From positions 23,560,001 to 23,624,000 of the forward strand of contig OZ116710.1 of the NCBI GenBank assembly GCA_964199315.1: 64,000 nt of DNA. The letters are read 5' to 3'. Positions 14,023-38,516 of this stretch are shown here, piece by piece. Numbering within the stretch: the stretch's first letter is position 1; every line of letters begins with the position of its first letter. The position numbers were made by a program, and so were the translations under genes. Under the pieces are notes generated by a model. It was not told the origin of the DNA and did not search any database. It saw only the letters and a program-made list of their open reading frames with translations. The stretch comes from Orbicella franksi. Its lineage: Eukaryota.

Positions 14023-17000
14023 ATGGACCGGTTAGTGTTTTTTTTTTTTTGGATAACTTAAATGTGATGTAGCGATTCGTTTTGTTTTGAAATTCAGCTA
14101 ATCCTTTACCTGAGGTTTCTCTTTCTTATGCTTATGACTACCTTCCTTTTTTTTAATTCCTCAGCCGAAGGAAACGTTTTAGGGCAGAAGTGAACGTGAG
14201 GTATCACCAAGAAGATGGTGTCCAAACTAACAGGTTGGAGCGGCTGAACGCTGTTGGCGAGACGAATGGTATAGGGTTTAGTGGTAATGCTGATGCCGAC
14301 GAGCCGGGCCATGAAATTGATTTAAATGCTGCAGCACCGGACATGGAACAATCAGATGAAAGTGATGGAGCAGAGACGTCCACCACCAATCACTACCAGA
14401 GGCTGCAAAGAGCAGAGAATCTTGGTCAAAGCTACGAGAGGGTGTTTTGGCAACAACATTTGAAAACCAAGCGTCTTTATTTGATGAGAGGTGCCACTTC
14501 TGTGAATCAGAAGCTGGTGTCTGTCGTTGTCTTGACTGTGGACCTTCAGTCAGCTTTTGCAAGTCTTGTGCTGTTTCAAGGCACACCAAATATAACATTT
14601 TTCATCACGTTGAAATTTTAACTGTAAGTCTTCTCTTTGGTTTATACTTTGTAGTTGTAAGTTTTGAAAAGTAGAAGTAAGCGTGATACAGTACGTTCAA
14701 ACCTTGCCCTTAATTTTACAAAGACATTTGGTTACTCTTGCCTTTTTTCTATTTGTGTTTTCTTCGTTATGTAAAAGCTTGGTCTTTTAAGGCATCTGCA
14801 GTCCACCCTGTTTTATTGACTATCAGTGAATCAGCCTCAACCCACAAATATAGGTTCACCTAATTTTGTAGTTTGTGTGTAGCTCATTGTTTGTCATTCA
14901 TGAGATTATTGGCATGTGTAAGACCCACCAAGTCAGCTTAGAGATCTTTCCAAGATATGAAGGCCAACTATTTAAAGTTGTGTTCCATAAACAAAGTGGG
15001 GTCTCCTGTTTTCGTAGGAGATCATGGCAAGCTGACGATTTTTATAAGCACATGCATTGAAATGGCTGATTTCTTTATTCAACACACCTGTTGCATTGTA
15101 GGCTGTTGATGTGTGGTGCAATCATATTAGTTTATTCAGTTGTATTACAGATTTATAGTTATGTTGAATGATCTAAATTGTATTTTTAATGTTTCAATTA
15201 AATATGTGTTTTGTTTAGGACTTAAAGATCTATGTCCCCTTAGAAATGGAGCGAATCTTGGTACTTGGCAACCATCATTGTTCTAGTACATCTACTACTG
15301 GTAGCTCTGTCCTTTTCCGTGAAGTAACTGTTGTAGACTCTCGAGGTTAGATATGTCAGCTAGCTTACTATGGTGCCGTGGAGTGTCTAATCTTATGTAG
15401 ACAGCAATTTAATGTTACGTATCAGTCTTCATAAGTACATATAATTTTTATCGTTAAGTCCCAATTTATAAAAAAAAAAAGAGAAAAGGATGTGTCTGCC
15501 ACAGGGCATACAGTAATGTTAAGATCCTGATATAGGCTTCTTCGTAATTACATTTAATTTTAATCTTTCAGCCCCAGTTGGAGAAAATGAGGATGTGTGT
15601 ACTAAAGAGCGAACAGTAATGTTAAGATTCTTCTAGAGGCAAATTGATATTAATAGTTGTAGCGGCCGGCGACTCTCGAGCGAACTAGAGGTGTCATGAG
15701 CCGGTGAAGACGACTTTTAAAGATAGGACTACTTTACGGGCTGACGAAATAAAGCACGCTGATGTGTAGGACAAATTGATTTATTTCCTTGACACCAATT
15801 GCGATAATCGTTGTTTAGCCGTAAACTGAAATTTGATTAAAAATAAAGCATAAGCTACTAAAGAAACAGTTCTTCTTGCGAGCATTGAGGTCCACGTGAT
15901 ACTTATGTACTTAACTTACACTAAACTGCGACGAAACTAGAAAACTAACCTAAACCTTATGACTGCAGGGCAGTAGAAAACAGCAAGTCTATATACGGAA
16001 TTGCAATAACTAATAAGATACGATCGATAAGAAAACTAACTGAGAATTCCGTGGAAACTAACTATTAAAAGGTAAAGACAACACTTACATATCAGTCCTA
16101 CGCTTGCCTCTAAAGGTAGACTGCTTTGGCTTCACTAGGCGGTCACTTTTAACTTCTTCAACTTAGGTGACTTGCGTTCGCGGTGAAAGCGAGGATACAA
16201 CTGACAAATCTAATAGCTACGTGCACGTACAGAAACTATAAGGCTGAATTGTTCCTTTGATTAGAACGGAACTACGTAATACTGCGGTAAGACTACAATA
16301 GATCATTGAGCGTTCATCACAATAGTAGTTGTAAATCTTGTTTGTGGGAGAGGCAATAAACAGTGAGTTGGTATATTGTTAATTTTAGGATTCTGTTCTG
16401 TAAGAACATGCCTTGCTGGTGTGTATATTCATTGACGGTGCACATTTTCTGTAGACAGTTCTTCATATGTATACCTGTATAAATTATGTAATCTATCTAT
16501 ATTTATATTTATGTAGGCTATCAAACAAAAGTGAAGGTGCAGTTTTGTAACTGTGAACCCGATTTTCTGCGGCTGTTACGTTTCAATCTTTGGGGTGCAA
16601 CACCAACAAAGCCTGAGTTGGCATTCACTCTAGATTTGATGAAGCTACTACACACCCTGAGTCTTGAGTGTCAAGTAGCTGTTAAAGACTTCTGTGCTGC
16701 CCTTGAGATCCTGACAGATGATGTTATCGTTTTTTCAGTGAGGACCACCTTTGATTCATATTCTTTCTTGTAATATTATTCTTTATTTTCTGCATCTATT
16801 TCTTTATGCTTCCATGTTTTAAGAGCAAAGTAGGCTGTTTGTGCCTTAAACAATCTTGCTTGTTTTTGAAGTACAACAGTGCTCGTTGCTTATTTCTCAC
16901 AGTATATATAATGATGATACCACATCATTTGTAGGTATTTCTGTTATATTTTTGGAACCCTCCTGTATTTTGATATATCCCACCATTAGTTTTTACCTTA

Positions 17001-20000
17001 GGAATACTTACCTCAAAACACTGCGGGTATGAAATTTAGGTTTAAGATATACTACCAACAAGTTGTGGCTTGTACATTACTTTAGATATGCATGTGTGCC
17101 TTTTCAGACAATTTTTTTCCAAGGATTGCGATGGCTGTCTGTTTACATTGTACCTATAACTGGTTTGTTTTTAGAACCAAAGAAAGCTATATCCAGTGGT
17201 CATAGACAGTCTTGAAGAATTTAGGTTTGTTCTATTTTTATGTCTCCTTACACCTTACTTATTATTGAACTACATTTGTAGTACTAGTTACTATTTATTT
17301 GTATTAAGTGTTGAGCTCTGAACAGTACAATGTTGCTGTTTTTTTGCAGGTTATATTGTCATAAACTATCCACTCTTAAGTTCACAGTTAGTGCTTGTAA
17401 TGCTGTTGAAACTATAGTGTGTCCTGCATGTCCCAAGGTATGGAGAATGGTGAGGTCAATATTGTAAGCACAGTGAATGTCTTAAGTGACAATCTGACAT
17501 CCTTTGATTGAAACAGAAGGAGATGGGAATGGCTGATATTGCCTGAGATTGTATGTTGATGACCTTTGAACACTATACCTTTAGTTCACTGTTGGGACTT
17601 CTAGTTAGCTTGGAATCCCTAGCCTGTTTGAAATTGTTTTGCTGAATGCTCATGAAGTATATCATTATGGGCCATGTTTGGAGACTTCCCTAGCTAGTTG
17701 TATAGACAATCTAGGTCTACCTAGAAAGAGATTGTTCAGTTGTCTAATCACTCTGTGTTAATTAATACACCTTTGCAGACTCAGGGTACCCTTCTTGAAT
17801 CCATGGATGCCTTATTTATTGGCCGAAAAAAGTCAGCAGGCAGAAGTGTGAGAAATCCTCTCTTTGGAACTGTTTTGTTTGATGATGACACAGAGGTGGA
17901 AGAGTTTGTTCAACAACATCCAACAACCAGTAGAGCAAATGGGGTGTGTGGAAACCTGTTTTCTCCAGCACAACTATTTGAGACATTAACTGACTGAAAC
18001 TATGTTGATACAGGGCTGTTAAAATTACATTAGAAAAATGATCTGGTAGTGGGAAAGTGCAATGAAGGGTGGGGAAAGGCAGGTATTTACCTAAGATTAT
18101 TACATTAATTGTATATTGTCTTAACTACAGCAGCGGGAATCGCCCAGCTGCATTGTGAATATCTCTTATTATTATTGCTATTAGTCAATTTAGATTGACT
18201 ATTTAAACCTTAAAAATGACAATGATATTTTTTGTTGTTTCTCCTGTACTTAGACTCACAGAATTGGATCATTTTTTGTTTCATTTAATTATAAGGTGTG
18301 TGGTGACTTTCTTGCTGGTGATGCACTACGTTCAAGATCTCGATATTCTGCCCTCAGTGAAACTGCCATATTTGGGCGGGCCTGTCGTCATGAGTTTCCC
18401 AAAAAATTTGTCAATATGAAACATGGTGAAAGGTAACATTTGTTTATGTTGTACTCCTTTACTGAATTGTCACTGTCAGAATTGCTTTGATTAATTTATT
18501 GATAATTTCTTTATTTCCTACCTTCCTTCCTTCCTTTCTTTCTTTAATTCTTTCTCTCTTTCTCTCTCTCTTGTTATGTAATTTTTGTTAAAGGATATAA
18601 CAACATCAACAACAACAACAATGTCCTCTTTATTACCCTTTTTTCATTAATTAATTAATACAGAAATATATAAAATATTGCTAAAAATTAGGGTTCTGGC
18701 AACCCGAAATAACCACTAGGTTAAAAATGCCGGGTTGCCAGTTTACAAATTGGTTAGTCAATGCTTTAATTTTGTGTCTAATTTTTAATTCTATGTTTTA
18801 ATTTTGTTTCTAATAGGCTTGCATACCCAGTTTGGATGTTGCAGAATCTGCTTGAGGAAATTGGTGATCAGTCCACAGATGTATGCATGCTTTATGATAT
18901 TGCTTGTCACCTGGAAACTCATTTACAGGTTCTGTTATCATTTTTTCATTTACTATTTTCATGAAAGGTCATGTAGATCTTATAACAAAGTCTTTTAAGC
19001 ACCAGTTAAGCAATGAAGTTTTTAATTTTGCTTTGATACAATATTACCACTGTAGGCCCAAGGACAGCATCACATCCTACAGTCTGTCAAGTTTGCCATT
19101 CCCATTTTCCATAGCTATGGACACAAAGCAAAATGCCAGGTCTGCTTAAATTATTCAGTTGACATCTGCTCATGTGTGTACCTGTGTGTTTTTGTTTGTT
19201 TGCCACACTGTATATCATGTTTTCTGTCAGAAAATTTGTCACAAAATTTCTTGGTGATTATTATTGAAATGTCCACTTATTTGAAACTAACTGTATGTCA
19301 AAAAAGTAGTATTTTAAGAAAGATGAGCATGTATGGCCACCCTGTGTTATGGGGTCAATGTTTGTGTTACTGGGATTGAACAGCATTTCTACTGTGTATT
19401 TAGTTCTGTTTTGATGAATTGTACTGATTTTCTAGATCAAATACAGTCCCAGGAGAGTTCCTGGCTTTGGTCTCACAGATGGTGAAGTCATGGAGAGACT
19501 TTGGTCCTTTTTACGGAGATTTGGAAAAATGACCAAGGAAATGAGGCCAAACCACCGGGTGGATGTTCTATCTGATGCTCTTTTCTTTTACGCCAAGAAA
19601 AGATCAGCAAGTTTAGGTTAGCTGAATGAACTTTTCATTCGTTCAATGTCAGTAGCAGCTTAATTAAGAAATTGTTGTCTAGGAAGGATTTCTTTGCATG
19701 GTTCCTGTGAACTTCTTTTTTACAAAACTATATGCCTCTTTGTTGTATGCTTTACAAGCAAATTTTCCCCCCTCTAGTCTTCTCCTTTTCCTTTTGAAAC
19801 CCTTGGATGGCAAGAAAATGCTGCAATTCTCATTTAAAGAATAGTTGTTTAAGAACCATCAGCTTTAACTAATATTTTATTTTTAAGGGAATTTTATTTT
19901 CATTCCATTTGTTTCCCCCAGGGAAACTTTTGTGTGTTCGCATGAAGAAAGCACATTTGGTAATTAAAGATGCAGAGGAAGAATTGTCAAAATTGCAGGA

Positions 20001-23000
20001 TAGCCTTACAGGTCAGATTGTTTTGCTTCCTCCTGATAATGTTGACTGCTGAATTCATCTGTGCCTGTTGCAGTTGGAGTCATGTACCTAACAGATTCAT
20101 TTCAGTCTTTTGAGAATTATGTCACTTTTCCTTTCAGAAACACCCGCACGAAACGAGCAGATCTGTTTATAGTCTGTTACAGATCTGCTGGTACATCTGT
20201 AGCAGATCTGCAGATAATCTACAGATGATCTACAGATTATCTGCAGATCATCTGCAGAATGTCTGCAGAATGTCTGCAGAATATCTGCAGAATGTCTGCA
20301 GAGCGTCTGCAGCGATGATCTGCAACAAGTCTGCAAATTTGCAGACGCTCTGCAGACGAAATCAGCCTATCATGTTAAACAAAAAGCCCACAAAATGCAC
20401 CAATCAAACAACGTTTATTTAAAAGATAGACAGGGGAGGTTGGTTTGTTATTCATCAAAAGTAAACAATTACTGTTGACAGATAAAGCAAATAATATCAC
20501 TAGCAGGAATTTAAAGTATTTTCTTAGCGTGACATTTTCCACATATTCCAAATGAATAAAAAAAACCTCGGGTAGCAACTACTCCTTTCAAAAAATCTAG
20601 GCTTCACGTAGCCTGCGAGCAACAAGGGAGCTTGCTCAGCTCGCAGGCTAGGCTTCGCGTGCTTATTTTGGTTCGCTTGGCAGGTTATTTACAGAAACGA
20701 GATCGAGTAAACTGGATACTAAGTGAGATTCATTTCCTTCTCGTCTGTGCTCGGCACCTGCTTGACATGAAGCCAGTTTAAAGGAACGAAAGAGGTAAGT
20801 CATAGAGTACATAAATAATGCACAACAGCCAACCTTCTTGTGTAAGTTGACTACATAACTAAAGTGCCACTCAGTCCTACTCCAGTTTGTTTCCAGAAAT
20901 TTTATATTTTGTACATAAATATCTATAGGAAGCAACAGATAAAAGCTCACAGGCTTCATAAAGTCACATTTATCTCTATTTTGCGCTCCAAAATTAATTT
21001 ATTCTACTTAAGAAATTGCATGGCTGGATTGCCTGTTCATTTCAAAAACTACCCATTTAAATGTTCCAAGCCTCCTGAACTGGTCTTTAAATGTTACTAT
21101 TAAGTACAGCTACGTATGTGCAATGTGCACGTAAATCTGCTCAAACAGTAAAAATCTGTAAATCGCGTCACCGTTACTCCAGACTTAGTTAATATGATTT
21201 CGGCAAGAATGCTGTGAATAAAATTGTTTCTCGATTTGCTGTTCACCTCTGATAATTACCCTGTTTTTTGAACGATCATCAGAGTTTAGTTAAACTGGAA
21301 TGTTACATTAAAAGATGTCTTAAAACAGTTGAAAAACCACCAACCTCCAGTCTTAATAATTTTCCCTGGGTAGGGAGTATTTTTACTGGTCTTCCTTCCT
21401 TTCTTTCCCTCCTCCCAGTCAACCATGGCGTCTAAGCCCTTGAGGATTTCTCCGGCATAATATACTTGCGAAGCACTTGCGACGCTATATAAATCTTCTT
21501 CCGTCCAAAGAACTATAGCAAAAGCCATCTTTTTATGTCAAAAAGCAATTTCTTACAGACTGTCTTGTTTGCGCGCAAAATTTGAATGTGACACTTTAAC
21601 TGAAAGGAATATCAGTGTCAGCAACATCTCCTACTCTTATTGGACGGTTCAAGTGTGACAGGTGTCGGGTATCAGCCAGGAGAATCTGTCATATTCGCAG
21701 CGGCCGATGAGATTTCACTTGTGGTTTTCTCTCTTTGTCGAGAACAGCAAATAAAGGTAAAGATAATTTGTACATTTATTTCATTTTCTTCATTACTGCG
21801 ATATACTTACATGTTTATACCCCCAAATTGAGGCATCACATTTCTTGTCACTAACAAACATGCCACTTAGGTCACCCGGTTATGCAAATCAGGGTCTGCG
21901 TTACTGACTCATTCTTGTAAGATAATGATGGTTTGAAACGTGATGTATTTCACCTCTGCCATTTCCGGGGCGTAGAAGACATCAAGATTTTAAGAACGTC
22001 TCCTTATGTTTTGAAGCTGTTGTAGGTATAAGAAAAATAATCATAGCACAGAGATTTAACCATCTTGTTCCACTTTTCATTATTCATTCACGTGTTGACT
22101 TCAACTTTCGTATCGTTGTTCTATCAACACTGATATGTCGATCGATGAAATGTTTTTCCCTGAGCATTTGGAACTGGGAATTTAACACCAATGTGCCCTG
22201 CAGTGTTCTTAAATTTTATTGAAAGGATGCGTTAGGCATATGTGTCTAATCCCTATATAATAAGAATAAATTAAGGTCGAAAGTGTATTTATCATTTAAT
22301 TTAAGTGTTCAATTGACGTATAACATTTGATTTACTAGCACGTTGTACGTAAGTGGCTGACCATTTATGCCTCTTATTTACGCATTTTCAATGTTCGACT
22401 ATCTTTTTATTCGTAGAATCGAACTATTTTATGCATCTCAAAACGAACCAGTCATGACTGATCCAACTAAGGTTAATATACCCAAGTGACGATACAATGA
22501 ATGGTCTATCGATCCGGTTTTTGGACTTCAACGTGTTGCAGATCATCTGCAGATGCTGCAGATATTCTGCAGATCTGTTGTTCGTCTGTTTTTGTCTGCA
22601 GTCTTAAAATCGGGAAGAGTTTTCAAGCTCAACGTCTGCAGCAGACTGAAAACAGACTCTGCAGACGATAAATTAGTCTGCAGTTGATCTGTTTTTGTCA
22701 AAACAGATCTGTTGCAGATCTACTGCAGATCTGCTCGTTTCGTACGGGCAGGCGATTTTTTTTTCTGTATTCCATTTCCTTTCCTTTTGCAATGTCCATG
22801 CAAATTAGACTTGTTTATATTATAACTACAGTATGTTCACAAGAAAATATCAACACGGTTTTATACATGTAAGCTGTCGAAAAGGTTTGAATTGCTTTAC
22901 ACTGGTACTAATATTATAAAATATTCATTTTGCAGTACCGGTTCGAAGGGAAGATGTTGCTGAATGGGCAAAGCAGGAAGCAGAATGGACAGGAGGATTA

Positions 23001-24783
23001 CATAACCCAGTTGAAGAACCCTGTTGGAGACATGGCTATGTAATCTACCTTAAAATGTTCTATGAAATCCACTCAAAATGGGAGCAAGCATCTGACCCTG
23101 ATAAACTTCAGCAACTTTATGGACAGTTGACCAAGTATGTATTTTTTGCGGGGATTTAGCCTATAATTTTTAATGCTTGTTTGCTTGCTTTTAGTAGTAA
23201 ATGCATTTTTTGGCTATATTTTGGTATGTAACATTGTTGCTGCATCATTTAATCAAAAGTGCTTTGTTAGGGTTGGGCCTCTTCAGAGTGTTTGATAGAG
23301 AAAAAGCCTATCATGCCACATACATTACGTGACTTTTTACCCTCGGGCACAGATTCTTTTTCAAATCTCCTCTATTCCTTTGTCAAAATCACTTTATACC
23401 GTGTAGCACAATTTTCAGCAGCATTGGATGAAAATAAGTGTGTATAAAATATTTTGTTGGATTTTATTAGATTAGAAGGAGTTTTGTCAGATTTGGAGCA
23501 CAGAAATGGCATTACTCAGCATTGCACTACTGCTTGTGAAGAATATCGGATGGCTCGAGATGCTGCCTATGACCGAAGCAAAAGGGTTGCTTTAGTGAAA
23601 CTGCATACAAAGGTTGTAGAACGGTGGTTCTTGTTGTGCTTGAAGGCGAAATATGCTGGCAAGTATTTTACCCAAATTTATGTATTTAAAAAGCTGGAGC
23701 GATTTGAGAGTCATGAAAACTGGTATCCGGTGTGATTGTTTGTGTGCAAGGAGATACGTGAAGTAAGAGCGGACCTGCCTCTTTTGCTAATCTCAAGAAG
23801 TTCCTGTGAAACGTATGTTAAACTCACAAACTTTAATTATCAACATGTATTTTCAGGGCCGTAATGAAAACCGCCGTTGGCGAGGGGGTTCCCTGGTTAA
23901 AAATTGCTGTTACTATTATTGTTANNNNNNNNNNNNNNNNNNNNNNNNNNNNNNNNNNNNNNNNNNNNNNNNNNNNNNNNNNNNNNNNNNNNNNNNNNNN
24001 NNNNNNNNNNNNNNNNNNNNNNNNNNNNNNNNNNNNNNNNNNNNNNNNNNNNNNNNNNNNNNNNNNNNNNNNNNNNNNNNNNNNNNNTTAATTGTGCTAC
24101 TCTGTTTACTTCTCTTAGATGGTCATGCTCTTGCCAAACGGCTCTCCAAACAAATTTCGCAAGCAACGAAGGCCATGGTAACTTCTCTCAATGAATTCAA
24201 CAGACTTGAGTGCAGCAGTGATTGGCCATTGCCTCGCTCGTTCGAGGTCGATGAAGTGAAAAATCCGGAAACAGAAGTCTGGATACGTAGCGAGTTCATG
24301 GGCTCAACATCACCAGTCCCCATTTCCGTAAAAAGAAAAGCAATTGACCTTTACAACTTGGTTGATCTTGCTAAAGAGGAAGTCACTTTACTTCAAAGTG
24401 ACATGAAAAACGTTATTGCCCACTTTACCGGAGAGCACGCGGTTTTTTCTTCATCACTGGCGAAGTCTTCCAGTATGTCCACTGAGGCTGAAGGGAGAGA
24501 TGTTTATATAAAAATGAAATTACTATCCCTAGAATCGCAACTTCTAGAGTTGAAAAATTTGTTTCTCTCGCACATTCACGAGATTGCTCTGCCAAGCTTT
24601 TTTTTTGAGCCGACAGACATCCCTTTAAAGAACAACTTTGAAACGGAAGAGGATGAACGAACTTTTCTTAGCCTTCCGGAAAGTGCTGATGGACAAGTCA
24701 GTGACAGTGACAGTGATGATGACACGGAATATGAAACTGAAGTCACTGATGATGCTGATAGTGGTTTCAACAGTTTGACCTAA
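14023..24783 (+). CDS. KDZ (Kyakuja-Dileera-Zisupton) DDE transposase with N-terminal Cys cluster, 15 exons, about 924 aa, one -1 frameshift in exon 2
   Basis: Exons: 14023-14030, 14165-14623, 15219-15345, 16517-16737, 17175-17224, 17350-17437, 17779-17943, 18296-18432, 18817-18928, 19056-19139, 19436-19616, 19922-20011, 22936-23134, 23471-23658, 24119-24783. All junctions are GT-AG (intron 14 GC-AG) and phase-compatible. The sum is 2774 nt, 1 nt short of 925 codons, with the frameshift near 14415. Motifs: CHFC..CRCLDCG..FCKSC..H...HH, CNC..GATPTKPELAF, CPACP, SMDALF, CRH..N..HGE, YDIAC, FHSYGH..CQ, GFGLTDGEVMERLWS, acidic tail. Confidence 0.9.
15658..16297. mobile_element. Probable solo LTR in KDZ intron 3
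   Basis: 640 bp bounded by TGTAG...CTACA, with a near-TSD atagt/ataga and AATAAA motifs. No internal ORF. Confidence 0.5.
20143..22748. mobile_element. 2.6-kb non-autonomous CMC/EnSpm(CACTA)-like element in KDZ intron 12
   Basis: TIR cccgcacgaaacgagcagatctg / cagatctgctcgtttcgtacggg, 2-bp TSD CA, and dense subterminal ctgcaga repeats at both ends. An internal ORF remnant lies at 21286-21528(-). Confidence 0.75.
23925..24087. other. Assembly gap (163 N) in KDZ intron 14
   Basis: Run of n. Confidence 1.
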
Positions 24784-25043
24784 TTAATACAATTTGCAAT
24801 GTTTGGATTTCTTGTACGAGGAATTTATCATGTTACAAATCTTGCGTTAAATTTATGATTCCACGATCACTGTACAATTAAAGTGCAATTCGTCCACCCT
24901 CCAAAGAAGTCTTTTTTATTGTGAAATGAACTATGCCGTTCCAGACGGTTGAGTGACATGGGAACGAATTAGTCAGAAATTAATATTCTGACGACACGTT
25001 GGAGAGATTGGCGCAGCATGATGGGTTAACCGGGAGTATTTAA

Positions 25044-25827
25044 GGGCCCATTAACCGATTTATGTGCGCGTTCGCGTGCGTTATTAAGGGGGGGAAATTT
25101 CACTTTCGGTTACTTACGTCAGCCTGAGCGCGGAAAATAAAAACAACTCAATAACTTGCAAATTCGCTTACATTTTGGATGTTTTCCTTTGTTTTTCACA
25201 AAATGCAAAGTAAAAAAAGTACAAGCAAAGACAAAATAAGAGAAAGACAGAAAAACAAGAGCAATAGAAAGAGAAAAACTAGCTCCGGTTGTTTTTGTTT
25301 GATCTTACCAAAGTGCACTAGTAATGTAAATAGCGCACGCGCTAATAGAGTAACTTCCAGTATATTTCGGGCGCACTTCCGGTTTCTTTAAATGTTAAAG
25401 GAAACGCGGTTTTTCATTAAATCCAGCCTTTTTTGACGGATTTCGATTAAAGCCAACGGTGGAAACATAGCTATGTATTCCTTTTTCGAAATCATGCTAT
25501 TTTCTGAAAATTGAGAATTTTTTAATATTTTGAAATTCTCTAAAAAATCTGACCTTTCAGAAATCAAACAAAATCTATGCATAACGATATGAGGATTTAA
25601 ATTAAAATATTAAATCAATGACAAAAAAATCCCGATAAAGTAATTTGCCTGGGAACCTTGGCGTTTTTCCAGTATTAGTCACATGACCATGGGCGTAGCC
25701 TGATGACGCCATCACTAGTGCTGCTGAGCATGAAAAACTTAACACACATAAACTAACTAAAAGTGATGAGGTTATACGAGAATAAATTTTTCTTAGCAAC
25801 GGCTCGAAAAGATCGGTTAATGAACCC
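25044..25827. mobile_element. 784-bp Kolobok-like MITE
   Basis: TIR gggcccattaaccgat / atcggttaatgaaccc, flanked by TTAA (25040-25043) and TTGA (25828-25831). GG termini after TTAA fit Kolobok. Confidence 0.6.
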
Positions 25828-26957: not shown

Positions 26958-27515
26958 CAGCGTTTATCCTCGAACTAGCGCCCGGGGCGCTTATTTAGAC
27001 ATTTAGGAGAAGGTGGAAGGCGCTTATTCGAGGGGAGTGGGGGGGTGGGGGCTTATTTAATTTTTCCTAAATCGTGGTCAGATATGATCAGGGTTTTTTC
27101 GTAATATATTTATATGTCAGTCCCTCAGAAGTCTCTCAGAAGGGTCTTGTCTCTCTTAGAGAACTACGTAATATAACCCCTTTGGTCGGTTTAAGCATGC
27201 TACACGCACAAGGTTGGCTGGGCTTTAGGCAGTGAATCATCAGATCTTCGTTACCGTCCGGTGCGACGGTCAATTTGCAGTGCTTGAATGAGTCAACGAT
27301 CACTTGCTGTGGTGATTGGGCACGACCAACACGACCAAAACTATACATCCTGTGCTGTCTCAGTACTCTTCGATAAAACAAGGGGAGTAGAGGGGGCGCT
27401 TGTTCGAAGGGAGGCGCTTTTTTAAATTTTGGCCGATGGGAAGGGCGCTTATTCGAAGGGGGCGCTTATTTAAGAGGGGGAGGAGGAGGAGGTCCTAGTT
27501 GGAGGATTTACGGTA
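26958..27515 (-). mobile_element. Internally deleted pogo/Tigger-type DNA transposon
   Basis: TIR cagcgtttatcctcgaactag / ctagttggaggatttacggta, with ggcgcttatt subterminal repeats. The minus-strand peptide VIVDSFKHCKLTVAPDGNEDLMIHCLKPSQPC matches the pogo transposase C-terminus. Confidence 0.7.
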
Positions 27516-28234
27516 TCTATGTAGGAAAAGTTTTCCAAAGCCTTATATTTCAAGAAAATGCAATTAATTTATTTGTTAAACACCGCAAAGAAGCTGGTAA
27601 AAAGTGACAGTTTACTCAAAGCTAGTTCAACAAGAATCCGAATCGTAGAGTTCCTAAATCAGCGACTTTTTACCTTTGCTCTCAAGAAGATTCTACCTTC
27701 GCGTCTGAGTTAAATGTCCTGTAAACGTCGAACTCATGACGCAGCGCAACATTTTCAGGTTGCGAGATCATTAGTATTTTTGAACTAGAAATTATTTCTC
27801 GAATCCGTCCCAGCGGTCGATGACCCAATCTCAAACTTTCAGGGTTTTAAAAACTGACTAAAACCAAGAATAATGACAATCTGTCAGGCAGGCATTTCAC
27901 CATAATGGGAAAAAGTCGAATTTTGACTTCCTTTAAGGTAACAGAAACGCAGACCTCCTTGAATTTACGGTCTCTGTCAGAAAATAAATTCTGAATTTTT
28001 CATTGTAGGTTATATGGTCATTTTTCGCGTTATTTGAGATTGCATTGGTCGACCGCCAATCTTATTTATTCTCCCACATTAGTGTTCGCCCTGTTCGAGC
28101 GCGTGACATAATTTGCAAAGTGATTATAAGAAGGCTAACAAAGAAATGAAAGAATAAGATGGAAAAAGGAAAGAAAAAAGCGAATAGGTACGGTTCGCAA
28201 AACAAGGATAGCCCAAATTTCTAGTTGTAATTAC

Positions 28235-28910
28235 TACATATCCAGCACAAAGACATCGATTTCTGATCCCAATTTCACGCCTGTACTTCCAAATGACTAG
28301 AAAAAGGGGATTGACCTTGGGAGTTTCTTGTAATTACCTATATACCCCGCACCAAGACATCGATGACCCCGATTTTCGTTTTCATACGTTATTTTCCAAA
28401 TCTCCAGAAAAAGCGGGGTTGACTTCGCGAGTTTCTCAGTTGTGATTAGCTACATATACCGCACCAAGACATCAATTTCTGACCCCAGTTTCGCGCATAC
28501 ACTTCCAAATGACTAGAAAAACGGAGTTGACTTTGCGAGTTTCTTGTAATTACCTACATACCCCGCACCAAGACATCGATTTCTGACCCCAATTTCGCGC
28601 ATACTCTTCCAAATGACTAGAAAAACGGAGTTGACTTTGCGAGTTTCTTGTAATTACCTACATACCCCGCACCAAGACATTGATTTCTGACCCCGATTTT
28701 CGTTTTCATACATTATTTACCAAATCACCAAACAAAGCGGAGTTCCCTTTGCGAGTTTCTCAGTTGTAATTACCTACGGATCCCGCACTGAGACATCGAT
28801 GTCTGACCCCAATTTCACGCATGCACTTCCAAATAACTAGAAAAACGGGATTGACTTTGCGAGTTTCTTGCAATCACCTATATACCCCGCACCAAGACAT
28901 CGATTTGTGA
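28235..28910. repeat. Minisatellite, about 104-117-bp unit, about 6.5 copies
   Basis: The unit ccccgcaccaagacatcgatttctgaccccaatttcgcgc...gttgactttgcgagtttcttgtaattacctacata recurs at about 28240, 28345, 28458, 28561, 28665, 28782 and 28885. Confidence 0.9.
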
Positions 28911-30479
28911 TTTCGAAAGATGGACATGTAGTCAAAATGCCCCGTTTCTGTGTAGTTAAAATTCAGGGATTTAAGGGTTGAATAATTGAGTGGAATCACC
29001 GTGAAAAAAAGTATCGACCTTCGGGATGGGGAGCGGTAGCAGAGGGGGGGTTTAGAGATAATTGTACGTAGCGAAAAGGGACAGTCTGAAGAAAAGGAAG
29101 CTTGGTATGCTTAGTTTTGCATTAGCCTCCCTCCCCACCCTCTGAATAATGACCGGTCTCCAAAGTATTGTAATGTACCTGTGAAATCCTAAAAATATAC
29201 AGAACGCTAAAAATTTCCGTGTATCAAGCTATAACACTCAGACCGTCAAATCATTCTCACTCCTTTAAATCCACAAGGCGTTGCGAGGCAGTCGCATTTC
29301 CGCTTACAAAACCGTCAACGGGAACGAGAAGTTTCGTTTCTGTGTGTTTATGGTGATATCTTCAGGCAATATTGCTATGCTTATTATTTAAAACCAAGAA
29401 AAATTTCCCGCGATCCTTTCTGATAAAAAGGTTAAATACTGCGTGGTGCTCGTTGTGATTCCAGTGTCCATAATAAGAATTCAACTGACTAGCCTAACCG
29501 GCCTAACAACGCAACTTGTTCTGATCCGTCGAAATGTTAGAAATTGGTCATGATCAGATCGACAAACCACGTTCTTTAAATAGCCAATGTGATCCGCCCG
29601 GAATAGGCTCACTACCCTCCGGGGGAAGGCACTCCCTCTAAACAGGGTTTATAACTTTGTATTTAGCTTCTCGGACAATTGAACAGGGTGTGTTTCTGCA
29701 CCGGAAGCCTTGATGCCAACAATTTTTTTTAATACAATTCTGTGATGTGAGTTGTAAATAAAAACAGTTATTGTACGTTAACTGGAAAGCAAATCCGGGT
29801 CACGAATAAAGGTCTCTTTTCTTAAACAGGATATCGAAATGAACGGATACTTTGTTAAAAAGTGTCAGGCTTTGAGGGCCTCGCCTAACTTGACCCCACC
29901 AAACTTTCCTTGAGTGCCCCTCTCCCTCCGAGCCAACCTATATGCACAGATAGGTTGGACCACTATAGTTGTTCAGATCAGTTAGGGTTATTGAGGTGTT
30001 TTTCAGTTTGTGCAAACTCAGACACAAGAAAAACTGAAAACATCAATTGCGTCGGTCTGCATAGTTATTAAAGCCCATGGAGACATAGAAGGTATTTCAT
30101 TTCTCTGACATCAATCTGTTTACAATGCCTTTCCCGCTAGCGTATTGCATCGTAGTTATTTTTCACCAATATAAAATTTCGGACAGGCAACGCACATGAA
30201 AGGGCGCATTACAGGATCTCCTTCTTCGGACTCATATTATACTAGGGGTATATGCTCTACACCGTTATTCTTCGTGGAAGTAAGTCTAAGAAATAAATTT
30301 CAGAGTTCTGTGTTGGGGTATGGCTACCTTTATTTGCAAGTTTCCTCTTGAAAAACCAAAATCGTTTGCAAGTTAAAATAAGAAGAAAACGTGTACCGTT
30401 TAAAGTTACATTTTCATCTCTTTAATGTTCAATCATAACAGACAGCAAAGTGCAATGGAGTGACAAACATTTCCTGACA

Positions 30480-33400
30480 TTATTCCGAATCAGTCTCCTC
30501 GCTTCGATTCTTGTCTTGTCCTGCATCTGCTGCATTTCGATTTACTGCAAATAACTTCTCCGCGGTTTGTCTTGAGCAACCTTCTTTAATCGTAACCATA
30601 TAAATCAATGCCTATGGTAATCAAAAATAATAACAAAGAAAAATAGTGAAACTGCAATATGGTGTTCATAAGAATTACCGACGTTTGCCTTATATAATAT
30701 ATCACAAACAAATAAACATTTCACAAAAGTACATCAGGGAATAGGTAGAGGGTAACTACAGGAAATCTCTAATAACGAAAACAGCTCTAGGTAGGTGAGA
30801 CATTAGGCTGGTAAGGCGAGTAGGAGAGCAGGTATTGAAAAGTTGAGAGATAAGCAGCATCTGGTAAAGAAAGGAAGGACTAACTTACCTCAGGAACTAA
30901 GACGGACATGAGGTAGCTCATCATCCTGGTGTTGGTTGGCTTAAAGTCTGACCAAATGCTCGGCAAAAATGACTTTATTTCATTAGTAAATCTTCTGATC
31001 TGTCCGAGGAAAAAGAATTACAACACTTTTTAAGAAGTGCTTGAATTACAATCACAACTGTAATCATAATCATTAACACGATAATAAGCGAAACACTCTA
31101 CGAATGAATAAATTAACTGATAACAAAAAAAGACAGCTACTATCAACAATTTTGCACATACCTTTGACCCGGTGAAATAACTGGTACAGTCACAACTGTG
31201 TATCAGAACTTCGTGTTCCTTTCTGGCGTTAAAAAGGCCATGCCTAGCGCTGGCGGTGTTCCCGTAAAGGATATTCTTAAGGTGGTCCTGTAAATAGATT
31301 TTAATATTATACAATTTTTAGAACCCCTTAAAAGCCATAACCGAGATAGGAAATAATTGATGCCAACTATTTCATGCATTCAATGAATTATAACTATTGA
31401 CGATTTGGAAGGAATCAAGGCTTCTTTTTGTTTCTATTTGAAAAAGACAGGGGAAGTCTGCTAATATCACCCTAATTGGATTGTGGATACTACCTTCAAA
31501 CCTGCGAGTTCCGGAGACTGAAAAAGTGACATTCCGGATGGATAATTCCTGATTGACGAGAAAAAGAAATACAAGTTGGTTACGAAAGCAGAGCTATCAT
31601 CTGACAACTCGCAAAAGATGTGAAACGTTCAGTGGGCGATAAGAAAAAAGTATCACACACTCACGACGGGTTAAGTTCTTTCGTCTTGCAACCGCAGAAG
31701 TACGGTCCATCCGGAACTCTCTCTATTCCGACACATTCAAAATGAAACCATTTAAAGCAGTCCTCGCAGTAAACCCAATTTTGCTGGTTTTCAGCCCGTT
31801 CACCTCTCCTCTTTTTTCTTTCAGGAACCTGCTGGCAAAGAGCCGCTTCACAGTTTTCATCTTCTGTACCATATTTACCCTTCTCCAACCTCTGCGTCGC
31901 TTTCCTCTTTCTAGTGGAACGTCTGGTATTGGTAGTGGCTATGGTGGATACGATGGTGGTGTTATCCGATATTGTGATGCTTGATGATGGTGTGGTGTTT
32001 GATGGTGTGGTGCTTGAAGGTGTGGTGCTCGGTGGTGCGGTACTTTGTAGTGTGTTGCCTGATGGTGCGGTGCCTGGTGCTGCGGTGACTAGCAGTGTGG
32101 TGCTTGGAAGTGTGGTGCTTGATGGTGTAGTGCTTGGTAGTATGGCACTTACAGATGTGGTGCTTGGAGGTGTGGTGCCTGGCAGTGTGATGCCTGGTAG
32201 TGTGATGCCTGGTGGTGTGGTGCTTGGAAGTGTGCTGCTTGATGGTGTGGTGCTTGGAAGTGTGCTGCTTGATGGTGTGGTGCTCAGTGGTGTGGTGCTT
32301 GGAAGTGTGCTGCTTGATGGTGTGGTGCTCGGTGGTGTGGTGCTTGGCTGTGCGGTGCTAGCTGCTGGAGTACTAGTGTTGTTTTCCTGTAGTGTATTGT
32401 TGATGATGGCTGGTGATGTGGTGGAGGATTGTAGTGTGTTTGCAGCTATGTTGATAGGGTTAGCTGATGTTGTCCTGTTGGATGGTTGACCGTTGGTGGT
32501 TATGATTGTGGTATCGGCGCTTATTGCAGGTGTCACAGTGTTATGCGTTAACGGTATCGTGGAACTAATCGTCTGTGGTGGTATGGGCGTGTTTGGAGCG
32601 GTAAGTTTGAAGATAATGTCGTTTTTAGCCGCAATTATTTTCTTCAAATTACCCACTCCATAACCCGATGGATGTTTTAAGGGCAGTGAGCCCATGTTTT
32701 CCACCAAAAGAGAAATTTTATTGCACTTAATGTCCTTATATGGGACTCTCATGCCACTCTTTCCGCATGCCTCACCTGGAAAATACAAGCGGAGTGAAAG
32801 ACTTTTAACCTTACATCCTTGCCGCGGACAAAGGCTGCCAGGCAAGGTTAAAAACCCCATTAACCCTATCGTGATTTGGCTTTTTCGGTCTCACTTAGAG
32901 TAACTGGCGCTTAAACATCCCTAAAGATATGTAATTATTTACCATATGTACGGTTGAATTGTAATAAATAAATAAACAAAATAAATAAACAATTAAATGA
33001 TAAACAAAAAGAATGAATGCATTAATGAGCGAAAGAACGAATAAACGAAAGAAGTAAAGAAAGAAAGAGAGTAGGAAAGAAAAAAAAGAAACACCAACTT
33101 TCCATCCATAAATTTAAACAAATCTAACGCTAAAATTTTCTCATGATGTAAACGACTACGTGCCGATAACTTTTCCACGAAAAATATACGGAAACGTTTG
33201 TTTAACGTAAGACATTCTTCATCAAGTACAGCTCACCGTTGTACTTGATATTTATACTTGGGTTTGGTAACGATGGAACACATACCGAGCAGAGAGCTTT
33301 AAGGAAAAGTAACTTACTGTATTTCCTGTTGAAGAGGTCAATTACTTGGCGACGCAAGTCTTCCTTTTCCGATCGGGAGGACGTCGTTATCCTTTCTCCT

Positions 33401-34382
33401 CCGGATGCTCCTGACAAAACCGAAATAACAGGTGACAAAATTATGACTGTTAAACATTGCGACATTTCGTAGATTGATCAGAGATCTCAAATCACGTTGA
33501 AATGAACTGAACTGAACTGACCTTCGCCATTGACAAACGAGTAAAACTTTGGAGCCAGCCGGAAATTCTCTACGAATTGTATTGCCCTTGGATGGCCAAG
33601 AACGTCCATACTTCCGTTGCCAGTGTCGCAAATAAAAAGACACTTAACACCTAAATCCTTTAGGTTTTGACACTGAAAAATAAAAAGACAAGGAACAGAA
33701 GAAATTTTAACAAGTTTATTGGTGAATTTATGAAACATTTTAAAATTGCTTTACCTCCCGTTTAACTTTCTTGAGTGTCCTATTTATTTGCTCTTTATCA
33801 GAAACAACTTCATCTGAGAGAAAATCCTCCTTTTCGTCCTCTGGAAGCTCACGCCACCTCTCAGCAAGAAAAGAATTCCTCTCTTCAAAGGTCATGTCTT
33901 TTATTTGTTCTGTAAAAAATCGTTCAAAGAAAAATTACAATTTTGTCCAAAAATCGCAAACCTCTTCTCAATAACGAATTTTCGCTACCAAACACGCCGT
34001 TTTAACATCGTCGACTCGGGGCACGACAGAGTTGCTATTCATGTTTTATTATAAGTGACCAAGATTCCAGCATAAGAACGTAAGAAAACGAACCCACCGT
34101 CTACTCTAGCGATCTCTTTGCAGAAAAGGTTAAAACCGTTCAAGTGTGACTTGTTTTGTCTGAAAAAGCAAAAAAAAATGTATGTAAAATGTTTACCAAA
34201 CGAAAACAAATAAATTCGTATGTAGATGTACGGATAACTGCATATCAACAACAATGGGAATAGGCTCGCTCAAGGGTGGCTGGAGGTTTAAGTTTAAAAA
34301 TATATTAAAAGACCGGTAAGGAGCAAGTTGCACCCTTTGTGCTATAGAAAATTTTAGGTGCTCACCTGACACGTTTAGGCAT
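30480..34382 (-). CDS. Uncharacterised 670-aa HMG-box + S/T/P-repeat + PHD-finger protein, 10 exons, intact; probable KDZ-transposon accessory gene
   Basis: Exons (minus): 34366-34382, 34098-34159, 33755-33909, 33522-33672, 33318-33410, 31665-32775, 31494-31548, 31162-31287, 30889-30999, 30480-30611. All are GT-AG and phase-compatible, 2013 nt with no internal stop. HMG box: KSHLNGFNLFCKE...LAERWRELPEDEKEDF. PHD: C-x4-C...WVYCEDCFKWFHFECVGI...YFCGC. Confidence 0.85.
31960..32360 (-). repeat. Coding 15/30-bp tandem repeat (STTPS/STLPS/GITLP units)
   Basis: ggtgtggtgctt-type units on the + strand encode the Thr/Ser/Pro-rich linker in exon 6. Confidence 0.85.
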
Positions 34383-34629
34383 GGTACAATAGAGAAATTG
34401 CAAGACTCAGAAACTTGGTTAGATGTGATATGGAGAGGAAGACAATAGCACTTTGATTGCAAAATCTTTGTTCAGTTATTAGCTATGTTACGCAACAAAG
34501 GTCAATGCGATTTCAATCATCACTTAGAAAAATGTCACGCAGTCAATACAGCAAAGTTGGACCAAGCTCTTATGCATGCTAAACTAGCATCGAATTAATA
34601 GCCCAAACATGGGATCTCGTAGCACATGA

Positions 34630-37600
34630 CAGGATTCCAAAATTATTACTGCACTTGTCGCTTTTGTCTGAACTGCGTGGCATTAAAAAAATCAAATAGT
34701 AGCTGCTTTATTTCAGTCATGTTCAGTCAGGGCTACCCGCCATTACATCGCCCGGCCGTAGGATCCTACAGCCTCTACATGACGCGATCAGGAGCGCAAT
34801 GTCATTCGTTTCATGGCTTGTTGTCCCCACTGTACGGTACCACAATCCTTATTGAGGTTTTTTATAGCAGAAGTTTAAATTAAATGCCAGTGGCCTTGAT
34901 TTGGGACGACTCTAAATTGTGAACTGAACTAATCCTTAGAGTTCCCTCACCCGGCCATACCCATACTATAGTACACAGCCAGGAGTCCAATTTCATTCCC
35001 TTCACAGCTTTCAATCTCCGATCGGCGACACTCACAGTTTTTCATCGGTTATTTCCATTGAAGCAACTTAGATGAAAGGAGAAATTTCCCTATTTGAGGC
35101 GACTTCAGAAGTTTACTTTTCACCGAGGGTTACCCATCATTAAATCGCCGACCCTTGGATCCTACAGATGCTTACACGACGCGGCCATGAGCGCAATTTC
35201 ATTCCTTTCATGGCTTGTCGTGCCCATTGCACGGTATAACAAGCCCTATTTACGTTTATTTTTATAACAGAAGCTTAAATTAAAAGCCAATAATGGTCTT
35301 GATTTGAGACGGCTGTAGAATGGGACTTCAACAGTTAAAATTACCCGGCAGGAACTCACCCGATCGTAACCATAATATAGTACACAGCCCAGCTTTCTAT
35401 CTTCGATTATCGGCGTTAGCGAATATTTTTTATTCAAGAAGAGTGGATGAAACGAAAAATGGCCTTACTTGAGGCGGCTTTAGAATTTATTTTTCACTGA
35501 GAGCTACCCATCATTAAATCGCCCGGTCGTAGGATCCTATAGTACGGCATCGGAGGAGCCTAAAATCATTCCATTTGCGGAATTTTATCGGCAAACAGCG
35601 ACATAAAACATTGTTTTCCGTATTTCGCGCTTTTGTCTGAACTGCGTGGGACTAAAAAATCAAATGGTTAGCTGCTTTTTTCAGATCATGTTCAGTTAGG
35701 GCTACCCGGCATTAAATCGCCCGGCCGTAGGATCCTACAGACTCTACATGACGCGGCCAGGAGCGCAATTTAATTCGTTTTCTGACTTGTTGTCCCTAAT
35801 GTTAGGTTTAACAATCCTTAATGACGTTTTTCTTTGCAGCAGAAGCTTAAATAAATGACAATGGTCTTGATTTGATACGGCTATAAATTGTCAAATAAAT
35901 CACCCTCAGAGTTCCTGTGCTATAGTACACAGCCAGGAGTCCAATTTCATTCCTTTCATAGCTTTCTATCTCCGATCGGCGGCGCTCACAGTTTTTTATC
36001 GGATATTTCCATCGTTCTGTCGAAGTAACTTAGATGAAAGGAGAAATTCCCTTATTTGAGGCGACTTCAGAAGTTTACTTTTCAGCAAGGGATACCCATC
36101 ATTAAATCGCCCGGCCGTAGGATCCTATAGTACATGCCCGGAGTACATGACACCAGAGGAGCAAAAAATCATTCCATTTGCGGCATTTTTATCGGCAGAC
36201 AGCGACATGAGACGTTGTAACTGTATTTTGCACTTTTGTCTGAAATGTGTGGCATTAAAAAATCAAATGGTAAGCGGCTATATGTCAGATTAAGTTCAGT
36301 TAGGGCTGCCTGCCATTAAATCGCCCGGCCGTAGGATCCTACAGCTAGCCTCTACATGACGCGACCAGGAGCGCAATTTAATTCCTTTTAGGGTTTGGTG
36401 TCCCCAATGTACGGTACAACAATCCTTATTGAGGTTTTTTTATAGCAGAAGCTTAAATTAAACGACAGTGGCCTTGATTTGAGACGGCTGTAAATTGTGA
36501 ACTGAACTAACCCTTAGAGTTCCCTCACCCGGCCATACCCATACTATAGTACACAGCCAGGAGTCCAATTTCATTTCCTTCACAGCTTTCAATCTCCGAT
36601 CGGCGACACTCACAGTTTTTCATCGGTTATTTCCATTGAAGCAACTTAGATGAAAGGAGAAATTTCCCTATTTGAGGCGACTTCAGAAGTTTAATTTTCA
36701 CCGAGGACTACCCATCATTAAATCGCCCGGCCCCAGGATCCTACAGACGCTACACGACGCGGCCACGAGCGCAATTTCATTCCTTTCGTGACTTGCCGTG
36801 CCCAATGCACGGTATAACAAGCCCTATTTACGTTTATTTTTATAACAGAAGCTTAAATTAAACGCCAATAATGGTCTTGATTTGAGACGGCTGTAGAATG
36901 GGACTTCAACAGTTAGAATTACCCGGCAGAAACTCACCCGATCGTAACCATATTATAGTACACAGCCCAGCTTTCTATCTCCGATTATCGGCGTTAGCGA
37001 ATATTTTTCATTCAAGAAGAGTAAATGAAATGAGAAATGGCCTTTTTTGAGACGACTTTTGAATTTTAATTTTTCGCTGAGGGCTACCCATCATTAAATC
37101 GCCCGGCCGTAGCATCCTATAGTACGACACCGGAGGAGTCCAAAATCATTCCATTTGCGGAATTTTATCGGCAAACAGTGACATAAAACATTATTGCTGT
37201 ATTTCGCGCTTTTGTCTGAACTGCGTGGGAGTAAAAAATCAAATGGTACGTTGTTAGAGTTCAGATCATGTTCAGTCAGGGCTACCCAGCTTTTAATCAC
37301 CCGGCCGTAGGATCCTACAGACTCTACACGACGCGGTCAGGAGTGCAATATTACTCGATTCATGGTTTGTAGTCCCCAGTTTACAGTATAACAATCCTTA
37401 ATGAAGCTAAATTGAATTAAATGACAATGGTCTTGATTTTAGACGGCTGTATTGTGACATGACCCTTAAAGTTCCCTCACCCGGCCATACCCATACTATA
37501 GTACACAGCCAGGAGTTCAATTTCATTCCCTTCGCAGCTTTCCATCTCCGATCTGCGGAGCTAACAGTTTTTCATCGGTTATTTCCATTGAAGTAGCTTA

Positions 37601-37900
37601 GATGAAAGGAGAAATTTCCTTATCAGAGGCGACTTCGGAAGTTTACTTTTCACCGAGAGCTACCCATAATTTTAAACGCTCGGATGTAAGATCCTACAGA
37701 CTCTGTGAGTCCACTCGCCAGTCGTTTTATAGCTTGTTGTCATCAATTCACGGTATAAACAGTCATTTTTCCAGCTTTTGTTATTTTTTCATAGCAGAAG
37801 TTTGAATAAAACGACAAATGGTTTTGATATGACGGGTTTGTAAAATGTGACTTCACCCTTAGAGTCAGCCGGCATAAAATCGCCCGGTTGTAGTATCCTA
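34630..37900. repeat. Complex tandem array with about 200/400-bp periodicity and a 1.57-kb higher-order duplication
   Basis: The core cattaaatcgcccggccgtaggatcctaca occurs at about 34742, 35138, 35512, 35710, 36100, 36313, 36716, 37091, 37293, 37665 and 37875. tttgtctgaactgcgtgg occurs at about 34662, 35632, 36234 and 37211. Confidence 0.9.
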
Positions 37901-38120
37901 CCATACTAGGCTCGTACTATAGTACGTACTATGACGGGTGACGCCCGCGTAATTTGGTGCACTTTCAGCGGGCATCACCCACAGGAGTCATGTGAACCGG
38001 GTGACACAGAGTGGTGGCGAGTACAGTCTCGTTTGACAGCGGTTTTTCACAATGGAAAGGTTAGTACTAGAAATCTGACCAATCCTCGTTTAGCTTAAAA
38101 TTTCCCAATCTAAATCCAAC

Positions 38121-38516
38121 ATGGCGGACGAATTGATACTTATGCGGTAGTTTGTTCCCATAATCCTGAAGCGTTTAAAGGCTGTTTCTTTCAAAGCTAC
38201 TTTCCTTGACAGAAGGGGTTCAAGAAGGCAAGCTACTTCTTTGTCCTTAGGCCGTCAGAGTAGTGGAGGAGCGTTTACTACTCATGAAAATCGCCGAATA
38301 CAGCAAGAGGTAAAGTGGACTAAGATCAGAGATCGTCTTGGTTATGTTGCCATTAAGAAATCTTCCCTTCCAACTGGGGCAGTTTGTATTTGGTGCCTGG
38401 AAACTTCAACTGCAATAAGATACCGTTACTGTGGGCCTCAAACGTTTTTGTGTTCCGAATGCGCTGGGAAACTTCATTCCAGTATCACCACATACCATGT
38501 TTTAGAGTTGTAGAAG
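38121..38516 (+). pseudogene. 5' fragment (exons 1-2) of a second, diverged KDZ transposase gene
   Basis: Exon 1 38121-38146 (MADELILM-R, in an AACATGGCGG context) and exon 2 38213-38516 with W..R and CIWC..IRYRYCGP..LCSEC..H....HVLEL*K. Same Cys cluster and intron phases as the 14023 gene. It has a premature TAG and one Cys->Tyr change; no later exons found. Confidence 0.75.

Follow-up and report, generated by a model that had tools for sequence, protein, structure and literature searches.

A candidate very large two-gene KDZ transposon, with an HMG-like/I-repeat/PHD accessory gene and tandem arrays, in the genome of the coral Orbicella franksi

KDZ/Zisupton (Kyakuja-Dileera-Zisupton) elements are among the least characterized DNA transposons. 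Some other DNA transposons encode two proteins: PIF/Harbinger elements have a transposase and a Myb-like DNA-binding protein, and En/Spm has TnpD together with TnpA, which binds subterminal repeats. The second protein of Harbinger is mentioned in PMC12730594, a source that also gives terminal inverted repeats (TIRs) and 8-bp target-site duplications (TSDs) for Zisupton and, in its passage citing Iyer et al. 2014, states that fungal KDZ, Plavaka, and other elements carry a TET/JBP dioxygenase gene; Zisupton-derived genes also exist in vertebrates (PMC3424704). In the literature that we searched, ends and target duplications are described for Zisupton itself only and accessory genes in fungi only (TET/JBP), and neither HMG or PHD partners of KDZ elements nor cnidarian KDZ elements came up. 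We analyzed a 64,000-nucleotide stretch of the coral Orbicella franksi (GenBank assembly GCA_964199315.1, contig OZ116710.1, positions 23,560,001 to 23,624,000, forward strand; hereafter the window, whose own coordinates are used throughout), which is eukaryotic DNA rich in transposable elements. An original prediction, made from the letters of the window alone, had proposed that an HMG-PHD gene in it is the cargo of an animal KDZ element, either convergent with one KDZ gene (KDZ1) between about 14 and 38 kb or head-to-head with a second one (KDZ2). Our reading, to which we give a probability of about 0.72, is that the segment from ~14.0 to ~38.0 kb represents a single copy of a DNA transposon that belongs to the KDZ (Zisupton-like) superfamily, is very large, and carries two genes.

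The transposase gene, KDZ1, occupies 14024-24780 on the plus strand and has the 15 exons originally proposed, with a 1-bp frameshift. It was delimited by Pfam matches (CxC2, CxC1, and KDZ), by tblastn with full-length animal KDZ proteins, and by tblastx with three orthologous loci, which placed the exons at approximately 14024-14031, 14164-14623, 15216-15347, 16531-16735, 17172-17231, 17345-17440, 17776-17958, 18296-18433, 18815-18928, 19059-19142, 19436-19618, 19921-20013, 22929-23141, 23463-23660, and 24119-24780. All 15 are conserved in the exon-by-exon tblastx comparison with the three loci, and the tiny exon 1 (ATG G.C CG/GT) is also present in two related loci, S7 and L006, which are described below. 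Exon 11 scores 43.8 bits against the KDZ catalytic domain (PF18758; cut-off, 26.6), exons 8-10 fit positions 53-168 of the Pfam KDZ profile in order, and upstream of this core the CxC cysteine cluster (PF18802/PF18803) is matched on exon 4 with 54 bits for CxC2 and 46.3 bits for CxC1. The exon-sized open reading frame (ORF) pieces at 14.1-24.8 kb follow one another as in the KDZ profile and align in order with full-length KDZ proteins from starfish, scallop, amphioxus, sea cucumber, mussel, and Astyanax, several of which sit in multi-member clusters. KDZ1 keeps MDALF.GRKK, YDIAC, FHSYGHK, and GLTDGE..ERLW at the places where its homologs have DGNFGLVRK, YDI.C, FH.YGH, and GLTDGE..ERLW, and we take the conserved acidic and histidine motifs to be part of the catalytic core. 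In this coral clade, the first of these motifs (window 17776-17830 and orthologs) is MDALF-IGRKK, a form shared by all four lineages and shorter by one residue than the DGNFGLVRK of other animals. The frameshift is a 1-bp deletion in exon 2, at about 14420 (14418-14422, plus strand), where DNA alignment gives GCAGAGAAT-CTTGG in the window and GCAGAGGATGCTTGG in L006; the L006, L009, and S7 loci are continuous in one frame there.

Convergent with KDZ1 is the accessory gene (34382-30480, minus strand), a spliced model of 10 exons with a 2013-nt coding sequence, 670 amino acids (aa), GT-AG boundaries at all introns, and no stop, and thus as intact as the original prediction had it. Its exons lie at 34382-34366, 34159-34098, 33909-33755, 33672-33522, 33410-33318, 32775-31665, 31548-31494, 31287-31162, 30999-30889, and 30611-30480. 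The predicted protein consists, in order, of an HMG-like box, a conserved middle domain, a single GTF2I-type I-repeat, a Pro/Ser/Thr-rich linker (the DNA of which is reported as a 15-bp repeat by Tandem Repeats Finder [TRF]), a PHD finger, and a conserved 120-residue C-domain, spanning residues 549-670, whose coding sequence is split over three short exons. The HMG box (PF00505) reaches 17.2 bits against a cut-off of 25.4 in a scan covering only the second half of the box (exon 3); for the first half, which exon 2 encodes (...NKSHLNGFNLFCKE...), the orthologs from S7 and L009, the only two loci extending that far, show 55-75% identity. The I-repeat (PF02946; cut-off, 27) reaches 33.1 bits for the window protein and 40.9 bits for its S7 ortholog, and its only sequence matches in the PDB are GTF2I and GTF2IRD1 repeats (best E value, 3.8e-6); an ESM Atlas look-up of the I-repeat region was uninformative (best score, 0.67). 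The PHD finger (PF00628; cut-off, 24) reaches 24.9 bits for the window protein and 27.9 bits for that of S7, and its nearest solved relatives in a PDB sequence search are the ING4, YNG1, TAF3, NSD, and KDM7 fingers.

The accessory protein resembles the vertebrate TFII-I family (GTF2I and GTF2IRD1) in having one I-repeat above the Pfam cut-off whose only PDB relatives belong to that family. It differs in that it has a single repeat rather than five or six, in that this repeat is joined to an HMG-like box and a PHD finger, and in that it is cnidarian and apparently transposon encoded; we do not count it as a member of the TFII-I family, as there is one I-repeat in 670 aa versus several tandem repeats that make up the body of the protein. 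The Orbicella faveolata ortholog is XP_020632726, an N-truncated model whose gene lies at 10001-13891 of locus L001 (MZGG01000726). It is annotated as "probable serine/threonine-protein kinase dyrk2" and contains no kinase domain, so the name is wrong. Two database searches, the first of which was swamped by the low-complexity linker, returned no protein relative other than this model, and it is the only annotated one in 5.8 billion protein clusters. The O. faveolata scaffold matches window 27048-34380 at 91-99% identity, and L001 is colinear with the window over this interval; runs of N on either side make its KDZ and array sides unreadable.

A search with the last KDZ exon against 5.8 billion proteins returned about 17 clusters at 90% identity, five of which are on long contigs whose surroundings could be read; several other relatives are on contigs too short to show their neighbors. 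Four other long-read assemblies, whose contigs we infer to derive from other cnidarian hosts, have a complete ortholog or paralog of KDZ1 with the same exon structure and, 4-10 kb further downstream, an accessory-gene homolog in convergent orientation. L006 (ERZ26858540) carries KDZ exons 1-15 and, on the opposite strand 7-9 kb downstream, PHD and C-domain exons up to the edge of the locus. S7, joined from the overlapping reads L013, L007, and L011 of one 857-kb contig (ERZ25071797), has the KDZ gene at 9143-20364 and the accessory gene, with all domains, at 34843-30040. L009/L012 (ERZ26692694) also has the full pair with all accessory domains, and L010 (ERZ26692669) has KDZ and C-domain exons and then a retroelement. 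The fifth locus, L005, holds only the last KDZ exon plus 210 bp (87.8% identity). Compared with the window exon by exon, the KDZ genes are 44-95% identical at the protein level and the accessory genes 41-75%. L009 and L010 are close relatives; their DNA identity is about 88% in KDZ exon 15 (85% in protein), which exceeds the 75-81% identity of the introns and points to moderate constraint on the transposase.

A KDZ gene with a convergent accessory homolog is therefore present at four loci in four assemblies, which is the opposite of an accessory gene that keeps its place across corals with no KDZ neighbor, or of KDZ copies that never have it nearby. This recurrence bears on the explanation that the HMG/I-repeat/PHD gene is an ordinary host gene that happens to lie beside transposon debris. 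Such a chance neighborhood would fit an accessory gene that is intact and annotated as a cellular gene in O. faveolata, next to a KDZ gene that is broken, but it would have to explain why the same convergent pairing is found in the four other assemblies and why the accessory gene of S7 lies inside inverted repeats; moreover, no homolog without a KDZ neighbor was found, with just one annotated homolog in existence. We regard it as highly improbable. The recurring pair and its position between the inverted repeats of S7 support the original proposal, in which an animal KDZ element carries the HMG-PHD gene as cargo.

The right end of the putative transposon is a terminal repeat of ~90 bp (37913-38003, plus strand) that directly follows the subterminal array, starts with the perfect palindrome GTACTATAGTAC, contains an internal 13-bp inverted repeat, and ends with ...GAACCGGGTG. 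This block is 80-82% identical in S7 and 77-78% identical in L012, and the alignments of the three right ends all stop on the same base, after ...GAA.CGGGTG. S7 contains an inverted copy of the block (8596-8689 versus 39658-39751; 78% identity over 97 nt; E value, 4e-13), about 250 bp upstream of the KDZ start codon, so that S7 contains a 31.2-kb unit between inverted repeats with both genes and both arrays. Its intact order is a ~90-bp TIR, the 15-exon KDZ gene, a tandem array, the convergent accessory gene, a long subterminal array, and the other terminal repeat. In the 245 kb of DNA compared, the terminal block occurs only four times. TIRs, which could not be identified in the window at first, were thus recovered by comparing related loci across species; a clean TSD was not. 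The internal 13-bp inverted repeat shows compensatory changes (four of 18 pairs, from five sequences), and it is only suggestive that the stem has been kept through such changes.

Between the accessory gene and the terminal block lies the subterminal array (34639-37900, plus strand), which was delimited by self-BLAST and core scans. At 3.26 kb, and starting 257 bp from the accessory ATG at 34382, it agrees with the original estimates of 3.3 kb and about 250 bp. Self-BLAST resolves it into units of about 400, 570, and 610 bp and a 1572-bp higher-order repeat that is present twice. It holds nine same-strand copies of the core ATTAAATCGCCCGGCCGTAGGATCC, most of which are followed by TATAGTAC, and a core of ~34 nt, ATTAAATCGCCCGGCCG.AG.ATC.TATAGTACG, is common to the window and S7 arrays, with nine same-strand copies in the former and at least 11 in the latter. 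In both other lineages whose sequence can be read on that side, the accessory gene likewise has an array upstream: in S7 this array spans about 4.2 kb at the corresponding position with a 216-bp period, and in L012 it consists of 15 copies of a different, 194-bp unit. The TATAGTAC octamer is the core of the terminal palindrome and has nine occurrences in the window array and 14 in that of S7, against a single one outside the array in either sequence; a relation between array and terminal block is suggestive only, since local alignment of the two did no better than shuffled sequences. No known RNA was matched in the array or the terminal block by Rfam at an E value of ≤1.

A second tandem array (28225-28910; 104-bp unit, 324-bp higher order, by TRF) lies in the spacer between the two gene 3' ends (24781-30479). 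Spacer arrays are also found in S7 at about 23.2-26.7 kb (957-bp period), in L009/L012 at 14756-15590 of L012 (108 bp), and in L010 at 11343-13930 (96 bp); their position is conserved in every lineage, and their unit sequences are unrelated.

The element thus delimited corresponds to the convergent arrangement of the original prediction, about 14-38 kb with the array subterminal, which is supported by the terminal block after the array and by its inverted copy in S7. The alternative was that the accessory gene stands head-to-head with KDZ2, the array being their shared intergenic, or promoter, region. There is indeed a KDZ-type ATG at 38122, 222 bp past the array and pointing away from the accessory gene, in agreement with the predicted start about 220 bp after it; what follows is a single exon and not the second KDZ gene that had been proposed. 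KDZ2 (38122-38510, plus strand) consists of a possible 26-nt exon 1 (38122-38147) and then 38213-38510, a stray N-terminal zinc-finger exon of another KDZ family that is 23% identical to KDZ1 exon 2 and 33% identical to an amphioxus KDZ. With 13 KDZ1 pieces and eight full-length KDZ proteins as queries, the interval from 38.5 to 64 kb yielded no further KDZ2 exons. The exon also lies beyond the base at which homology with S7, L012, and L014 (a contig described below) stops, the outer tip of the terminal block is oriented toward it, and in S7 and L012 the DNA past the terminal block has no KDZ exon. KDZ2 is a KDZ fragment unrelated to the element, located just beyond its right end, and not a gene; because it is a single exon, beyond the tip, and without a counterpart in S7 or L012, we reject the head-to-head model, to which we give next to no credence.

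A pattern built from the three right ends led to a further right end, in a JGI metagenome contig (L014). It matches window 36792-38003 at 98-99% identity, with a 107-bp deletion in the array, and diverges from base 38004 onward, immediately after ...GAACCGGGTG; none of its flank is present in the window, and the breakpoint is the end defined independently by the cross-species alignments. Beyond it, at 877-3078 on the minus strand of L014, is an intact single-exon ORF of 734 aa encoding a TRIM-like protein (RING, B-box, filamin, and beta-propeller), with its ATG about 45 nt beyond the tip. The simplest readings of L014 are that it represents a second copy or a polymorphic insertion.

This second flank bears on the main alternative, that the locus is resident or domesticated. 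Domesticated genes are recognized by lost terminal repeats, an intact ORF, and a single copy that keeps its place among its host neighbors in all species; here, S7 keeps its inverted terminal repeats, the window ORF is frameshifted, which is unexpected for a gene that the host requires, and L014 joins a 99%-identical right end to a different flank. Under the resident explanation, an ancient KDZ element was fixed in an ancestor common to these corals and inherited vertically as a single-copy two-gene block, and its terminal blocks and arrays would have been retained for a present host function, such as regulation, boundary formation, or a programmed DNA transaction of which they are the sites. 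Such a history would account for the few database relatives, for the same exon structure at 44-95% protein identity with introns that cannot be aligned, for a terminal block that is better conserved than its surroundings, for right flanks that all begin alike (GTG[G]AC), and for a window copy that is common to the O. faveolata assembly; it would not lead one to expect the solo last-exon fragment of L005. Comparison of the window flanks with all loci by tblastx, in the little flank that is comparable, found shared repeats only and no conserved flanking host gene. Taken together, we consider a resident locus unlikely, and we prefer the reading of the segment as a copy of a two-gene KDZ transposon.

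Several observations weigh against that preferred reading. Inverted terminal repeats are demonstrated in one lineage only, S7, which is the one contig that can be read from end to end; 620 bp of upstream sequence in L006 contains no left terminal repeat, and in the window, three probes on both strands of 1-14300 and a blastn-short search of the whole window returned only noise. Unfortunately, a clean TSD was not found in S7, the only element with both ends. Its flanks GTAGACAAT and GTGGACAAT match at eight of nine positions if the tip is taken as ...CGG; all four right ends share a further GTG past this point, so the duplication may be only the 6-bp GACAAT that follows in S7 (6/6), with unequal tips. 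The likeness of array and terminal block comes down to one 8-mer, with an alignment no better than shuffles, and that either protein binds the array is something that we only infer. It is also possible that L014, being a short-read contig, is a rearrangement at the same locus or a misjoin. Finally, about 17 clusters for the last KDZ exon make the copy number look low, which also fits a resident, vertically inherited locus.

Of the element, the window copy retains the right end and the array, and its accessory gene is intact. Since its transposase is frameshifted and no left end was detected, it is probably no longer mobile on its own.

Compared with the systems introduced above, the coral element is like Zisupton and other KDZ elements in its KDZ catalytic domain, CxC cluster, and TIRs, and the nearest full-length relatives of KDZ1 are multi-copy KDZ proteins of fish and marine invertebrates. 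It differs from them in being much larger (24 to 31 kb) and intron-rich (15 exons) and in having a second conserved gene and two tandem arrays; unlike Zisupton, it comes without a demonstrated 8-bp TSD, and its copy number is apparently low. As in the fungal elements that carry TET/JBP genes, a KDZ transposase appears to be co-mobilized with a chromatin- or DNA-directed accessory gene, whereas the coral cargo is a predicted DNA- and histone-binding protein (HMG-like, I-repeat, and PHD) and no enzyme, and the host is an animal. With PIF/Harbinger and En/Spm it shares a transposase plus a separately encoded, predicted DNA-binding protein and repeated subterminal sites near an end; unlike in those elements, the subterminal array is on one side only, and the transposase superfamily and accessory domains are unrelated to theirs. 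By analogy, the coral element most likely works like these two-protein transposons.

In such a scheme, the KDZ protein would be the cut-and-paste enzyme, cutting and joining at the terminal repeats, and the accessory protein would be the element's own DNA-binding, architectural factor. With its I-repeat and HMG-like modules, the latter may bind the terminal palindrome and the repeated sites of the subterminal array and bend the DNA, and its PHD finger could anchor the complex on methylated tails of histone H3. Harbinger and En/Spm elements use their second proteins in a like manner, and so are the RAG and Sleeping Beauty enzymes assisted by HMGB1. A more specific idea, which we consider a long shot, is that the accessory protein steers the element, its PHD finger and DNA-binding modules tethering the transposase complex to active promoters with insertions just upstream of start codons. 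The PHD finger resembles H3K4me3-reading fingers, and in both right-end flanks available at 99% identity the tip lies 45-120 bp upstream of an outward-pointing ATG (KDZ2 in the window and the TRIM-like gene in L014); support for promoter steering is thin because the S7 and L012 flanks show no gene start beyond the right tip. A second idea, weaker than this one, is that vertebrate TFII-I proteins owe their I-repeat DNA-binding domain to a module first encoded by a transposon.

An assembly gap (23925-24087) interrupts KDZ1 within intron 14 (23661-24118, a GC-AG intron), between exon 14, ending at 23660 (TATGCTG/GCAAGT, a GC donor), and exon 15, starting at 24119 after tcttag. The joined reading, ...LKAKYA-D-GHALAKRLSKQI..., aligns residue for residue with ...Y-P-D-GQ.IA.KLSKQL... 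of the homologs, with no residue missing; a cDNA-like Logan contig of a relative (L002, from SRR26074476; 85-93% identical) has the exact exon 14/15 junction, KAKYADGHAL; and tblastx comparison found no conserved coding block between exons 14 and 15 in the orthologs. On these three grounds, the gap is intronic and hides no coding sequence, and both of its sides are correct in order, orientation, and phase. In L002 itself (1-1116), KDZ exon 4 is followed immediately by sequence that begins 92 nt before exon 14, and 73 nt are missing inside exon 15; the contig represents, in a related coral, either an alternative transcript or a copy with an internal deletion.

Other mobile elements are present within and around the segment. 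An unrelated TIR element of ~2.6 kb is nested in KDZ1 intron 12 (20143-22748), with 23-nt inverted ends that are 96% complementary and arrays of an 11-bp TCTGCAGAAT-type subterminal repeat at both ends. Just upstream of the expected left end of the KDZ element, the interval 10026-12980 is occupied by inverted repeats: a foldback-like element at 10026-12063 has long inverted repeats with arms of 211, 116, 76, and 69 nt, and the following 0.9 kb (12063-12980) is bounded by a second inverted pair of 66 nt. On the right, a 214-bp tandem repeat (39564-40056) directly precedes a Penelope-like retroelement fragment (40661-41839, plus strand), a 393-aa ORF with a GIY-YIG domain (Pfam E value, 1.4e-5) and reverse transcriptase-like motifs.

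If our reading holds, these coral loci would give a complete animal KDZ element with defined ends and a long array of repeated sites beside one of them. The analysis also corrects a database name, the dyrk2-like kinase label of the O. faveolata protein being wrong, and would place a TFII-I-type I-repeat in a cnidarian mobile element. The predicted domains of the second gene point to DNA bending, sequence-specific binding, and histone-tail reading, and they raise the questions of whether a cut-and-paste transposase may need an architectural or chromatin-reading partner of its own and whether such a partner protein may choose the landing site of the element.

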